Below are positions 8,566 to 58,152 of a DNA stretch of 64,000 nucleotides, piece by piece. The notes beneath the pieces are model-generated. The model was given only the letters and a program-made list of their open reading frames with translations, ran no database searches and was not told the DNA's origin. The DNA is taken from the sequence record PQ390715.1; one strand, given 5' to 3'. Position 1 is the first letter of the stretch. The number at the start of each line of letters is the position of its first letter. The position numbers were made by a program, and so were the translations under genes.

Positions 8566-9102
8566 TTAATCCTTTTTACCAAAACCAGCACTCATATATT
8601 GAGAGTATTTATTGTCTTTTTTCGATGCTTCAATTGCATCATCAACGGCAGTGTCTGCACGTTGTTGTCCAGCTAAGTCATAACTGTCTTCTGGTTTGCC
8701 AAAATCCACTCCAATAACTGGTTCATCAACATCATCAAAATCGATATCATCTTCCAAATCAGTCATTTCAATTTGACGAGGTTCATCTTTACTACGAACA
8801 CGAATCAATGCTTCTGTCATGCTTAGTAAATTGCCAATTTCATACATTAGTACATTTGATTGAACGCCACGATGACATTTAAAGTCAAACATCCAAATTT
8901 CACCACAATCTAATTCATAGAAATCTAATGGTTTTTCCATAAAAATTGTTTTCTTTAGTGCTCCAATTTCAAACGCATCATAGCGATCCATTAGTCGCTG
9001 TGTTACTTTACTAAGTTGTTCAGGTGTTGGTTCAACTGCAAACTTAACTCGGTATTCATAAACTGGTTTCTTTTCAGTTAGGATTTGTTGTAATCTATTC
9101 AT
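8566..9102 (-). CDS. hypothetical protein
   Basis: ORF track; GGAG RBS. Confidence 0.8.
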   Translation of the reverse strand: MNRLQQILTEKKPVYEYRVKFAVEPTPEQLSKVTQRLMDRYDAFEIGALKKTIFMEKPLDFYELDCGEIWMFDFKCHRGVQSNVLMYEIGNLLSMTEALIRVRSKDEPRQIEMTDLEDDIDFDDVDEPVIGVDFGKPEDSYDLAGQQRADTAVDDAIEASKKDNKYSQYMSAGFGKKD

Positions 9103-9129
9103 TTTAATAACTCCATAAGGTCGTTTAAG

Positions 9130-11237
<2,108 letters not shown>

Positions 11238-20503: not shown

Positions 20504-20532
20504 ATTATATCAGTTATTGGTTTTTTGTCCCA
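20504..20532 (-). promoter_or_regulatory. GGGACA-class promoter
   Basis: TGGGACA, N16 spacer ending TGA, TATAAT. Confidence 0.65.
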
Positions 20533-25464: not shown

Positions 25465-25821
25465 TTATTTCTTGTGTAAAGGTTCATCACTTTCATAATA
25501 AATTGTATCATTATTTCGCTCTATAGTAAAGCTCTTTTGACACAACTCTTCAGCTAAACCCTTTGCATAGTTTAATACATCTCGGTTGAGATATACTTCT
25601 TCTTTTGGAAAGCGTGGGTACTGAATAATACGAGCACACATCCCACTTTCAAGACCGCCAGTGTAGATATATTCACAGGGAATTAATTGTACACAAAAGC
25701 CATGCTTAAACGCAAACTTTCTTGTGTACTCTCTTGCTGTTTGAATATCACCAGCAATATGGATATTCCAGTACTGTGTCTCCACTGTACCTTTATCGAT
25801 GTATTTCATACTCATCTCCAA
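25465..25821 (-). CDS. hypothetical protein
   Basis: ORF track; YTGGLESG and YPRFP motifs; function unknown. Confidence 0.75.
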   Translation of the reverse strand: MEMSMKYIDKGTVETQYWNIHIAGDIQTAREYTRKFAFKHGFCVQLIPCEYIYTGGLESGMCARIIQYPRFPKEEVYLNRDVLNYAKGLAEELCQKSFTIERNNDTIYYESDEPLHKK

Positions 25822-25838
25822 TTATAGCACTAAAAATC

Positions 25839-26228
25839 TCACTTTCCCAACTCTTCTATGATTCTTTTTATTGAATCATGATTTTCCAGACATAAAGTAC
25901 TGTAATTTCTGCCAGTTTTTTCATTGAGGTCGTCGATTTCAATCATAAGATATCCATATGTAATATCTTGAACCCTACTTCGTTTTACCCTTGAGTACAG
26001 CTTGATTGGTACTGATACACGAGTATTCAAAAAGAATTCTGGCAAATCATAACGATATACCAGGTATTCATTCTTGTAACGTTTACGACTGTACGATTCG
26101 AAACACTGCGGATAACGTCTATCAAACATACTACTTCTTAGTTGAAGTATGATTGGATCTAACTTATGTGAGTAATATTTTTTGATTATTTTATCAAATC
26201 TTTTTACATGTCGTTTACGCCATCTCAT
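25839..26228 (-). CDS. hypothetical protein
   Basis: ORF track; GGAG RBS. Confidence 0.7.
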   Translation of the reverse strand: MRWRKRHVKRFDKIIKKYYSHKLDPIILQLRSSMFDRRYPQCFESYSRKRYKNEYLVYRYDLPEFFLNTRVSVPIKLYSRVKRSRVQDITYGYLMIEIDDLNEKTGRNYSTLCLENHDSIKRIIEELGK

Positions 26229-30513: not shown

Positions 30514-30942
30514 TTAGTTAATAATAAAGGTAATTTCAGGATTCATTTCCGAAACTGCATTGCGTTTACTTCTATCCCATAGTATTCTGTTATTATACAA
30601 AGAAGAATCACATACTACAAGTAAGCAATTTCTTAATCTACTTACAGTACTTTGATTATTTAAATCAGTTTCTGAAATAAAAAATACATTTTCAGGAACT
30701 ACTAAAGGAATAGATTTATCAAAAAACAAAACTACAATAGGTCTTGTTGTATGAACTGATTTAACGAAATCCAAAATACTATTATAAAAATTAGTTTCTT
30801 TAGTAATTACTGACGGATCTTTAATTCTTTTCAAATATTGCTGTGGTAATTGATGTTCGTCTTTTATCTGAAACTCAAAATATTCTTTGAATAACATTTG
30901 TGTTAATTCGGATTTATCGGATATTTTCGTTGTGTTACTCAT
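30514..30942 (-). CDS. hypothetical protein
   Basis: ORF track. Confidence 0.7.
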   Translation of the reverse strand: MSNTTKISDKSELTQMLFKEYFEFQIKDEHQLPQQYLKRIKDPSVITKETNFYNSILDFVKSVHTTRPIVVLFFDKSIPLVVPENVFFISETDLNNQSTVSRLRNCLLVVCDSSLYNNRILWDRSKRNAVSEMNPEITFIIN

Positions 30943-31082
30943 TCACTTCGTTCTCTCGTAACTCAAGAAGTCACTGCGTTTACTTCGTAAACTAGTTCCT
31001 TCTGAAAATGATAATGTACTTTAAAAACTTGACGGGATTTGTTGAGGACTATTACATCCCCCCGCAGGGGAATGAAGGTAAT

Positions 31083-31108
31083 AAAAAAGAGACAATTAAG
31101 TCTCTCTT
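31083..31108 (-). terminator. Rho-independent terminator closing the candidate ncRNA
   Basis: AGAGAC-TTAATT-GTCTCT followed by TTTTT on minus. Confidence 0.7.
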
Positions 31109-31144
31109 GACGATGATGGCATCGGATATTATCGAATTGCGAAT

Positions 31145-31326
31145 TTCTCAAATTTTGGACGGATCTTTCTTGTACCAAAATTTAGAGAGCGAAAGCGGGT
31201 TGCTCGGTTTCTCTCTATCGCAGTCATATGCAACGGTCGCTGGTCTTTTCATCAACAGCACTCAGTACTAACTCTATTCGATCAAAGTAGTACTTGTTCT
31301 CAAATTTTGGACGCAACTTTCTTGTA
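31145..31326. repeat. two 30-nt direct repeats (31145-31174 and 31297-31326)
   Basis: TTCTCAAATTTTGGACG(GAT/CAA)CTTTCTTGTA, 27/30 identical. Confidence 0.9.
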
Positions 31327-31603
31327 AAAATTGCGTCCGCTATTCTTGAACTCCCTTAGCAAATCTGGTAAGGTGCGAACCTTATACATCTATCTAGGAA
31401 CTCTCTGTATGCTTATCGGAGTTCTTTATACAGCCGTGTCGCCGTGATTCGTGGTCTTACATCGTGTTTGTTTGAATGCCAGTACTCTAACAGGTTTCTT
31501 CTGCTGTTCGCTACAACGGTAAAGCTCATCTATCCTTTACATTTTCAAGAGAAGTAGGTTCTCAGTGTCCATTTTTCAATGTCCGTTGTCATTTTCTATA
31601 TAC

Positions 31604-31632
31604 ATTATATCATTGGAACATATAATGTCCCA
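31604..31632 (-). promoter_or_regulatory. GGGACA-class promoter
   Basis: TGGGACA, N16 spacer ending TGA, TATAAT, immediately after the stop of 31633-32109. Confidence 0.65.
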
Positions 31633-32109
31633 TTACATGTATACTTTTTTTAAATCCTTAGAACAACGATCAAAAATTGTGTTTATGAATTCAACATCTT
31701 CGATAATATTCGAATCGTTAGCAACATTTTCATTTCTTGTCGTGTTCCTATATGTGTGTTCAGGATGATTGTATACCACCTTGACTACATTATTTAGGTC
31801 TATAAAATTTGACGTTTTTTGCGTATAGGAAGCCTGAAGCTTGATGAGTTTACCATCATTCTCAAGATTGGTTTTATGAATTAGTTCTTCAATGCCAGTT
31901 AAATGGCTATAGCTATCTTTTTCTTTTACAAAAGTAATAGTAACAAGAACTGCTTTCTCATCTCCCATATCGGAAATGTTTTTTACAGCACTGATAATTT
32001 CTAAGTTTGAAAAATCTAATTCTTTAAGCATTTTACAAATATTTCCACAAAGTTCGATAAGTGATAATTTCTTCTCTGGTAACAGAAACTTCATTGCACT
32101 TAACACCAT
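31633..32109 (-). CDS. hypothetical protein (start probably MLKEL, about 32030)
   Basis: ORF track; the later start removes the overlap. Confidence 0.7.
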   Translation of the reverse strand: MVLSAMKFLLPEKKLSLIELCGNICKMLKELDFSNLEIISAVKNISDMGDEKAVLVTITFVKEKDSYSHLTGIEELIHKTNLENDGKLIKLQASYTQKTSNFIDLNNVVKVVYNHPEHTYRNTTRNENVANDSNIIEDVEFINTIFDRCSKDLKKVYM

Positions 32110-32430: not shown

Positions 32431-32561
32431 TATAATATCATATCAATCATGTTTATTCAATTTCTTCTGTTCTTTTTTCAAAGCTTTCATATGACGACCA
32501 AACTCTCGAACATGCCATAGATGATCAGTTTCCCATAATTCTTGACGTAACCTACGTTCTT

Positions 32562-33101
32562 CTAGTAGTTTTGACTTGTCAATGTTATTTTTCTTTTTTT
32601 TTGTACATTAAAGAAATTATTCATATGTTCTTGGAGAAGATTACGACCTTTAACTTTCTCAAGAAACTCATCAACTGTTTCAGTTTTATTCGAACGTAGT
32701 TGATTACATCTGGAGCACATAGTATTAAAGTTTGACTCTAAATCAGGTCCACCCTTAGATGCCAGATGATTATGGTCAACTGTCATTAAAACTTCATAAA
32801 GACCACATACAGCATATACATTTAAATGTGGTTTACCATATACTGGATCAGAACATAATGAACGTTCAATGCGTACTTCAGTAGCTTCAATCCCACATGC
32901 CACGCATTTTGGATTCTTAACAAAAGTAAGAACTTTTTGTGGGAAATATCGAAAAGTAATACCATTTAAAGTGTAGCGTTTCATCTTAGTACTTCGTTGA
33001 TTTAATTCTTCAAGAAGTGATAATTTTGTCGTATAGTAAACATGATATTTGTTCATTTTATTCCTTGATATTGATTTTAATATCTTTACCTTGTAAATCA
33101 C
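32562..33101 (-). CDS. HNH endonuclease; may extend to 32443 through the A9 run
   Basis: CVACG, TVDH..LASKGG, N....CSRCN motifs. Confidence 0.85.
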   Translation of the reverse strand: MIYKVKILKSISRNKMNKYHVYYTTKLSLLEELNQRSTKMKRYTLNGITFRYFPQKVLTFVKNPKCVACGIEATEVRIERSLCSDPVYGKPHLNVYAVCGLYEVLMTVDHNHLASKGGPDLESNFNTMCSRCNQLRSNKTETVDEFLEKVKGRNLLQEHMNNFFNVQKKRKITLTSQNY

Positions 33102-57600: not shown

Positions 57601-58152
57601 CTATAGATAACTAATTAGTAAGTTTTCTTTTTGAACCAGATACTCCAATTCTTGTTTTGCTGTACCGATGAAGTTCTGTGTCATAAGATTATTATATCCC
57701 GCTTCTCGATTTTGTCCCTTAGAATAACGAGAAATATGACATAAATTTACACCAGCAACTTCTGCACTTGCATGTTTAGCATTAGTGTATCCATCTCTAA
57801 TGTGTTTCAACTCGTCATAGCTCACTTCATAGCTAAAACTATGACTGTTTGCACCTGGGTAAATTTCAAAAGTTTTGAGTGGTCGAAGATGGGAAACAAA
57901 AATATTGTAATCCATTTCTTCTTGAACTTCACGACGCAACGCATCTTCTAGTGAGATATCAGTACTTTCTACGGTTCCACCACATCCACCAAGAAGACCA
58001 TCCCATCGTAATTGCAGTAATACTAAATTTACTTCTGGTATATCATTCAACTCATAGTTTTTGTAAGGGTTGCATTTTCTTGCAAAGAAATAACAAAATA
58101 CAAAATTTGCACGTGTGCCATATTCACCAAAGGGAACTTCTTTAACACTCAT
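57601..58152 (-). CDS. NUDT16-like Nudix hydrolase
   Basis: LLQLRWDGLLGGCGGTVE..DISLEDALRREVQEE; AKHASAEVAG; NFIGTAKQEL. Confidence 0.7.
   Translation of the reverse strand: MSVKEVPFGEYGTRANFVFCYFFARKCNPYKNYELNDIPEVNLVLLQLRWDGLLGGCGGTVESTDISLEDALRREVQEEMDYNIFVSHLRPLKTFEIYPGANSHSFSYEVSYDELKHIRDGYTNAKHASAEVAGVNLCHISRYSKGQNREAGYNNLMTQNFIGTAKQELEYLVQKENLLISYL

Follow-up and report, generated by a model that had tools for sequence, protein, structure and literature searches.

What does a stretch of phage DNA carry where no credible gene can be read? The question is raised by sequence record PQ390715.1, of which we analyzed a stretch of 64,000 nucleotides (hereafter, the window). Between the minus-strand open reading frames (ORFs) at 31633-32109 and 30514-30942 lie 690 bp in which all ORFs are of 87 amino acids or less. 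An earlier note, made by reading the sequence, had described this gap as lacking a credible gene and had proposed that it holds a new structured non-coding RNA with its own promoter and terminator on the minus strand. Positions 30943-31632 indeed present no coding signal, and the proposal is borne out by covariation among 90 homologs and by the lack of any Rfam match. On this comparative evidence, we consider it nearly certain that the gap contains a genuine RNA gene, that its product is folded and that the family is new. The window locus, referred to here as copy A, is one paralog of this undescribed family of multi-pseudoknotted RNAs of roughly 450-700 nt.

A gap without coding signal

The window region is 100% identical to the Escherichia phages vB_EcoM_G17, SHEFM2K and Sharanji (genus Asteriusvirus, roughly 350-370 kb). 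ORF-coverage statistics gave no information in this A+T-rich DNA. Codon periodicity was sought in the alignment of the RNA and none was found, no phase being favored among the variable columns (92/123, 100/126 and 93/126). Likewise, indel runs in multiples of three were not favored in the family alignment, where 82-85% of the runs are non-multiples of three. Conservation that follows codons rather than base pairing, the outcome that the earlier note had named as speaking against an RNA, is thus not what is seen. The GC content of the RNA region is 40%, as compared to 31% in the flanks, and a stretch of 518 nt has a minimum free energy z-score of -3.67, being more stable than 100 of 100 shuffled sequences.

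In GenBank, small ORFs overlie the RNA on either strand, in the window at ~31116-31271 (plus strand) and at equivalent positions in relatives. Examples are G17_00407, 121Q gp516, A4_511, fHe-Yen9-04 g347/g348, 7t3_0445-0448, RaK2 ORF245 and Muenster_135. As the pattern of substitutions and indels is non-coding, these annotations are probably spurious gene calls.

Transcription signals and strand

The gap opens with a promoter on the minus strand (31604-31632) that was recovered by two scans. It consists of the -35-like element TGGGACA (31626-31632), 14 nt and the extended -10 element TGATATAAT (31604-31612), from which transcription would start near 31597. The promoter had been noticed at the first reading, and it is retained at a conserved position in almost all of 42 aligned family members. 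The same promoter type (a TGGGACA-like -35, 14 nt and TGNTATAAT) precedes other minus-strand units in the window, at 1495-1523, 20504-20532, 25821-25849 and 57691-57719. In phages CBB and GAP32, a 'divergent RpoD-like' promoter with an unusual -35 element was described, mostly upstream of DNA-synthesis genes (PMC5259590). The promoter of the RNA is of this class.

At the other end of the RNA, the U-tailed hairpin first reported on the minus strand is present at 31083-31105 as a terminator-like hairpin followed by a run of six U, and it ends a core of roughly 515 nt. Its stem covaries, being 98% paired across the family with double changes in four of the five pairs, although the hairpin is absent from about one third of the family members. 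Because the RNA has its own promoter and terminator, and because a second copy in the same phage (copy B) is flanked by genes on the opposite strand, we read it as its own transcription unit. With a sigma-70-type promoter, an intrinsic terminator and no coding signal, the locus shows what is predicted of a free-standing, bacterial-type RNA gene.

The strand had first been assigned from irregular pairs in two stems that read as G-U on the minus strand and as C-A on the plus strand. The same logic can be applied to the family as a whole: because G.U combinations exceed A.C combinations by 171 to 8 across the helices, the RNA strand is minus.

Architecture of the conserved core

The structure is based on the 42-sequence alignment and on 90 distinct full-length sequences. 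Stacked covarying column pairs were located and, for each helix, pairs were then counted and compared with slid-partner controls; the counts are our own and are not those of R-scape. BLASTN against related jumbo phages followed by covariation analysis, the route proposed earlier, thus yielded homologs in which the helices covary. By these counts, about 16 helices (P) and two to three pseudoknots (PK) are backed by compensatory change in the 90 distinct sequences. Pairing reaches 89-100% in twelve helices, each of which has 3-36 variants, as compared to 10-60% in the slid-partner controls. P2, P4, P5 and PK-H are 100% paired, PK-A, P12 and P13 are more than 99% paired with 15-17 variants each, and for P3, P7, P10 and P11 the paired share is 89-96%, with 16-36 variants per helix. 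The core also contains long invariant unpaired stretches. All features described below lie on the minus strand and are given in the 5' to 3' direction of the RNA.

The 5' domain (31510..31589) comprises P1, P1a, P2 and P3. P1 (31583-89 with 31513-19) is the long-range pairing ACAACGG/CCGUUGU that was seen at the first reading, and more than 20 complementary versions of it are found in relatives. Its 3' strand lies within the loop closed by P2 (31523-25 with 31510-12; six variants, 90/90 fully paired). P1a (31570-81) is a variable hairpin, while P3 (31533-52; 95% paired, 16 variants) presents a conserved 9-nt loop. A hammerhead-like junction around P2 was considered and rejected in view of the strand topology and of the lack of a matching Rfam model.

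The 5' domain is followed by a stack of P4, P5 and P6 with a variable tip (31430..31507), for which P4 (31503-07 with 31430-34) contributes 10 variants with 87/87 fully paired and P5 (31490-93 with 31442-45) five variants with 83/83 fully paired. In some relatives, the tip of the stack is replaced by a 4-nt loop that closes P5. Next come the hairpins P7 (31398-31424), with double changes in 6/6 pairs and 36 variants, and P8 (31369-31384), for which variants were noted, with conserved linkers between them. The invariant linker GCUAAGGGAG (31352-61) then precedes P9. An RNase P-like, long-range pairing of this linker with the CCUGUUAG block was also considered. It was dropped because that block pairs locally as P5, which shows compensatory changes and is capped by the 4-nt loop in some relatives.

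P9 (31348-51 with 31296-99) is a variable helix that is reduced to a short hairpin in many relatives. In the window, it carries module 1, namely the 13-bp stem at 31309-38, which is present as had been described but is a variable insert and not a conserved core element. P10 (31264-31294) is the AGUACU-closed stem of the first reading, and its inner part is 97.5% paired. The 7-nt loop of P10 (31276-82) pairs with 31131-37 to form PK-A, with double changes in 7/7 pairs, 15 variants and 80/82 fully paired; the partner strand lies 140 nt downstream of the hairpin loop. Both P1 and PK-A could form within one molecule or between molecules. On the metagenomic jumbo-phage contigs L188, L218, L233, L238 and L068, we observed a paralog type that apparently lacks P10 and keeps a sequence at the 3' position of PK-A; because P10, which provides the PK-A loop, is apparently missing, the fold of this type must differ at that point.

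The 3' core (31131..31259) starts with the hairpin P11 (31239-59) and is organized around a three-way junction. The helix first proposed to close this junction, UGCGA/UCGCA, is P12 (31218-22 with 31138-42), which shows 16 variants with 88/90 fully paired. One of the two arms that had been proposed, AAUUUUGG/CCAAAAUU, also stands, as the tip of a covarying helix. The other, UAGAGAG/CUCUCUA, does not, since it is 71% paired, exactly as in its slid control (71%), and its register is not conserved. What covaries instead is GAGAG (31211-15) with CUUUC (31191-95), which form P13 (17 variants, 88/90 fully paired), and UCUC (31185-88) with GAGA (31146-49), which form P14 (13 variants, 45/47 fully paired) and carry module 2. 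A further pairing, PK-H, joins 31230-34 to 31199-31203 inside the loop of P13 (three variants, 90/90 fully paired). The 3' core is followed by the hairpin P15 (31109-23) and then by the terminator-like hairpin. A small hairpin GAGAA/UUCUC from the first reading was set aside, its register not being conserved.

The first reading had also described a duplicated, protein-binding-like module. The underlying 30-nt repeat is found at 31145-74 and 31297-326, with 93% identity and a spacing of 152 nt, and the window thus does hold two copies. As a feature of the core, the module fails: the ACAAGAAAG modules cap two helices that are variable, P9 and P14, and of the 42 aligned RNAs, 17 lack the module, 21 carry it once and four carry it twice. 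The module is a lineage-specific peripheral insert and not part of the core.

Conservation past the terminator

The earlier note had taken the RNA to end at 31083. This is not the whole unit. Because conservation runs on past the terminator, the conserved unit, as judged from the alignment, is ~31632-30934 and extends about 140 nt further on the minus strand. Two elements beyond the position of the terminator are conserved in 42/42 homologs, namely the G+C-rich hairpin P16 (31055-74) and a tail (31028-47) that ends in CGUCAAG, a second copy of the motif with which P15 ends. Each is unique in the 64-kb window, and the idea that the tail or the G-rich hairpin is a general phage promoter or regulatory site was rejected on this ground. 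The two CGUCA(A)G copies change in concert, with four states in the 90 sequences and concordance in the first five letters, a pattern that suggests either a partner common to both or that each can pair alternatively with the 5' strand of P15.

The remaining 3' extension (30934..31027) starts with an A+T-rich stretch, as its first 40 nt average 77.5% A+T as compared to a background of 66%. It then holds two AACG(A/C)AGUGA motifs (30971-80 and 30943-52), unique in the window, and the hairpin P17 (30958-62 with 30934-38), for which compensatory stem differences among relatives were noted. The loop of P17 holds the start codon of ORF 30514-30942 in the window copy, so that read-through transcripts might influence translation of this ORF at that copy.

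Not all paralogs are arranged in this manner. In one type (L005, ~1400-1440; also L011, L040, L054, L143 and L142), a strong hairpin with a U-run stands right after the -10 element, and there is no terminator after P15. That hairpin could be either a 5' attenuator or stabilizer, or the terminator of an upstream operon that overlaps the promoter.

Distribution in phages and in bacterial chromosomes

In BLASTN searches, the element was found in 72 phage records and, among the matches listed, the full-length genomes were all of RaK2-like jumbo phages of 310-386 kb. The hosts of the matched phages are Escherichia, Klebsiella, Salmonella, Erwinia, Yersinia, Cronobacter, Pectobacterium, Serratia and Xanthomonas. 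Homologs are present in all RaK2-like genera, while none was found in other kinds of phage in a collection of 50,697 records. In the inspected genomes, the RNA lies in a stretch of 700-900 bp without a credible gene, the neighbors of which vary by lineage, and no neighboring gene family shared among the phage loci was found.

The earlier note had treated the RNA as a single one. Pattern scans and profile searches instead reveal a multi-copy family, with two to five diverged paralogs per genome. The paralog types are conserved across genera, and paralogs that reside in the same genome differ in their PK-A sequence in 13 of 14 genomes. Copy B lies ~79 kb from copy A, beside recombination genes (gp46/47-like and endonuclease VII). 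The two genes that flank it, those for endonuclease VII and a baseplate hub, are both encoded on the opposite strand.

The RNA is also found outside of phages. When one genome per species was scanned with a strict pattern, eight full-length copies were recovered in assemblies of Serratia, Enterobacter, Silvania and Buttiauxella and in further Enterobacteriaceae assemblies. Of these copies, five lie just downstream of an integrase gene of the tyrosine or large serine type. In four of these five, a CI-like S24 repressor gene comes after the RNA, and at one further bacterial copy only a repressor gene lies beside it. The integrase-then-RNA loci are L162, L164, L165, L166 and L169 (Buttiauxella, Silvania, Enterobacteriaceae, Serratia and Enterobacter); the S24 repressor follows in L162, L164 and L169, and in L162 is itself followed by a Cro-like gene and a small invertase. 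These loci look like compact integrative elements and not like full prophages. In Serratia fonticola (L167), the RNA is instead preceded by genes for a serine recombinase and for two ParB/RepB-like proteins, and the chromosomal genes rof and tilS lie next to it.

Among 5426 complete E. coli genomes, two carry a copy. In the one E. coli genome that was inspected, strain LR-29-1 (NZ_AP027515, 3470142-3488515, segment L170), the RNA (8886-9588 of this segment) belongs to a roughly 10-kb island that separates ffs from ybaA, where it lies in an unannotated gap of 1.4 kb and scores 452 bits against the phage profile. Its phage-type promoter and its terminator are both present, as are P16 and the tail. 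The island further contains a tyrosine integrase gene disrupted by IS3, a small serine recombinase gene and the candidate defense genes PDC-M45 (DuOB, DUF488 and DUF4326). Island copies use the same promoter type as the phage copies, retain the core helices and contribute new compensatory variants of them. Two island proteins were searched against jumbo phages and neither had a homolog; because of this, the RNA cassette is the only part found in common between the islands and the phages. A replication gene was not recognized in the islands with the RNA, and no plasmid copies of the RNA were found.

Relation to known RNAs

The window was searched with Rfam 15 (4227 models, including those of RNase P, tmRNA, group I and II introns, 6S, ROOL, GOLLD, OLE, HEARO, raiA, pRNA and the small ribozymes), as were eleven further homologous loci. 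At the gathering threshold there was no match in the window. Nor was there one at the RNA in three further loci with copies, where ffs, serving as a positive control, was recovered. When the threshold was relaxed to E <=10, only scattered noise was seen, with nothing that recurs at the RNA across homologs. ARAGORN detected no tRNA or tmRNA gene in the window. As for group I and II introns, the flanking ORFs are separate and complete, the neighbors vary and no Rfam intron model matches. In place of the tandem repeats of a CRISPR array or of a type III antitoxin, the only repeat is the two-copy 30-nt pair. That the RNA could not be matched by eye to tmRNA, RNase P, a group I intron or CRISPR, as first reported, is in line with the ARAGORN and repeat tests and with the comparison with all 4227 Rfam families, which had been suggested as a check. 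An earlier description of the family was sought in the literature and none was found, the one relevant result being the promoter class of CBB (PMC5259590). We thus regard the RNA as a member of a new, previously undescribed class.

Several known RNAs nonetheless offer a comparison. RNase P RNA and tmRNA are of similar size and share with the phage RNA the presence of pseudoknots and of invariant single-stranded blocks; the phage RNA, however, has no tRNA-like domain and a different order of helices, and neither Rfam nor ARAGORN matches it. The packaging RNA of phi29 is likewise a phage RNA with covarying loop complementarity, intermolecular in its case, but it is about three times smaller and single-copy, and its Rfam model misses the phage RNA. 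ROOL and GOLLD (studied by cryo-EM, bioRxiv 10.1101/2024.12.08.627333) are, like the phage RNA, free-standing and densely structured RNA genes of several hundred nt in phages or prophages, with no dedicated protein gene and with no function assigned to either set. A further likeness may lie in a loop helix of the PK-A type, which in principle could form between molecules of the phage RNA. The differences are that the ROOL and GOLLD covariance models miss the phage RNA, that its architecture is another one and that it occurs in jumbo phages of Enterobacterales as two to five diverged paralogs. Finally, RNA-seq of PA5oct revealed the abundant non-coding transcripts ncRNA001-004, which, like the RNA described here, come from gene-free gaps of a jumbo phage, in that case a distantly related one (PMC7318152). 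An nhmmer comparison (E <=10) with two of these, ncRNA001 and ncRNA002, revealed no homology.

How the RNA might act

The reading that we tentatively favor as plausible is one of action in trans, by the folded RNA or by a ribonucleoprotein (RNP). Host RNA polymerase would transcribe it from the phage-specific, sigma-70-type promoter with its extended -10; most transcripts would stop at the U-tailed hairpin (31083) and read-through would append the conserved 3' extension. The RNA would then fold into a fixed three-dimensional core, in which a chain of hairpins is locked by P1, PK-A and the 5-bp PK-H around the three-way junction, with the ACAAGAAAG-type modules as optional peripheral decorations. 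In trans, the folded RNA or RNP would present its invariant unpaired nucleotides to a partner common to all carriers, for which a host component or a further copy of the RNA would be the likeliest candidate. We infer this mode of action, and the kind of partner, from the cassette that runs from promoter to terminator, from the rigid core with its optional inserts, from the conserved paralog types and from the presence of the RNA in elements that are otherwise unrelated and have only the host in common.

Some points weigh against this reading and need to be considered. Conservation continues for ~140 nt past the terminator, which a simple terminated, trans-acting RNA would not need, and one third of the members have no terminator. 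Moreover, the promoter class and the multi-copy layout would fit an origin transcript equally well.

Such an origin role is, of the alternatives, the one that survives best, and we regard it as possible, although on the unlikely side. The RNA would in this case belong to a cis-acting replication-origin unit, in which the promoter yields a folded transcript. The 3' part of this transcript, reached by read-through, would hybridize with the DNA of the A+T-rich stretch that follows the G-rich hairpin and would there serve as a primer of phage DNA synthesis. For the islands, the benefit of the element would be replication by the replisome of the phage. It would then resemble the transcripts of T4 oriF and oriG or ColE1 RNA II, which share with it a promoter-driven, non-coding transcript followed by an A+T-rich stretch, several copies per genome and a promoter class linked to replication. 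T4 origins use middle-mode promoters. In CBB and GAP32, promoters of the class seen here are reported to precede DNA-synthesis genes (PMC5259590). The two to five dispersed copies per genome, the position of copy B beside gp46/47-like recombination genes, endonuclease VII and a baseplate hub gene, conservation past the terminator into 40 nt of 77.5% A+T (background 66%) with repeated short motifs, and the presence of the RNA in small islands without a recognized replication gene are all in line with such a role. A primer, however, would leave the ~16 covarying helices, the pseudoknots and the invariant unpaired nucleotides unexplained. The conservation of paralog types across genera also speaks against this role. 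No T4 origin RNA is known to be conserved and folded. Unlike in the T4 and ColE1 systems, an intrinsic terminator usually precedes the A+T-rich stretch, such that in two thirds of the members it stands between the core and the putative initiation zone. An inflection in GC skew was looked for at the locus and none was seen, although this is weak evidence for T4-like phages.

The idea that the family is a self-sufficient, portable RNA machine, be it a new ribozyme, a self-assembling RNA particle or the folded replicator RNA of T4-like jumbo phages, we consider speculative and rather unlikely. A new ribozyme as such appears doubtful to us. Its substrate might be another RNA, or it might process itself; possible sites for the latter would be the CGUCA(A)G motifs, one on either side of the segment with the terminator and the G-rich hairpin. 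The size of the RNA, its pseudoknots and its strictly invariant junction nucleotides are typical of catalytic RNAs, the RNA has no dedicated protein gene, and the twice-occurring motif changes in concert through its four states. That concerted change, however, also fits a shared protein partner or alternative pairing with the 5' strand of P15, a catalytic core is not recognizable and no Rfam ribozyme model matches, even at E <=10.

The function first proposed for this locus, namely a decoy or sponge for a host defense or RNA-binding protein, seems improbable. The paralogs would in that case be tuned to different targets. The diverged paralogs, the variable peripheral modules, the sigma-70-type promoter of its own and the occurrence in mobile islands, one of which also holds candidate defense genes (PDC-M45), would suit a decoy. 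Its universal presence in the clade and the extreme conservation of its core are, however, unlike what is typical of accessory counter-defense genes, and a decoy would in any case be a special case of trans action and not a distinct alternative.

A cis-regulatory leader or riboswitch, a coding or decayed gene and a DNA-only element were rejected as very improbable, even though P17 encloses the start codon of ORF 30514-30942 and several GenBank records annotate small ORFs over the region: no constant family of same-strand downstream genes is found, as the genes that follow the RNA have no relation to each other from one paralog locus to the next, and at copy B as well as in the islands they are convergent with it. 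There is no periodicity and indels are not in multiples of three. Moreover, the G.U pairs specific to one strand and the compensatory changes call for a nucleic acid in single-stranded form.

Other features of the window

Two genes upstream of the RNA, the minus-strand ORF at ~32442-33053 occupies the position of an annotated HNH endonuclease gene in phages A4 and 121Q, and its length of 612 nt equals that of the A4 gene. A homing endonuclease may thus lie near the RNA locus. Elsewhere in the window, pairs of direct repeats of 45-70 nt with 79-88% identity were observed within coding regions (11899-11968/12684-12753, 21839-21887/22245-22293 and 41427-41471/44778-44822). These probably mark tandem paralogous genes.

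Implications

In the GenBank records that we inspected, the RNA was overlooked or mis-annotated as tiny ORFs. It is universal in a whole clade of jumbo coliphages and Klebsiella phages that are candidates for therapy. It stands out in having several conserved paralogs per genome and in being common to phages and to islands in host chromosomes. Were the replicator reading true, no hitch-hikers or satellites of jumbo phages would have been known before the islands with a copy, unless these islands are RNA-mimic defenses against such phages; in either case they would be wired to the transcription program of the phage through the same phage-type promoter. Large and intricate RNAs without an assigned job are rare, and they have repeatedly opened new biochemistry, as with RNase P, self-splicing introns, the guide RNAs of IscB and the cages of ROOL and GOLLD. 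The family provides a deep covariation data set for work on RNA structure and a testable handle on an unexplained step of jumbo-phage biology.

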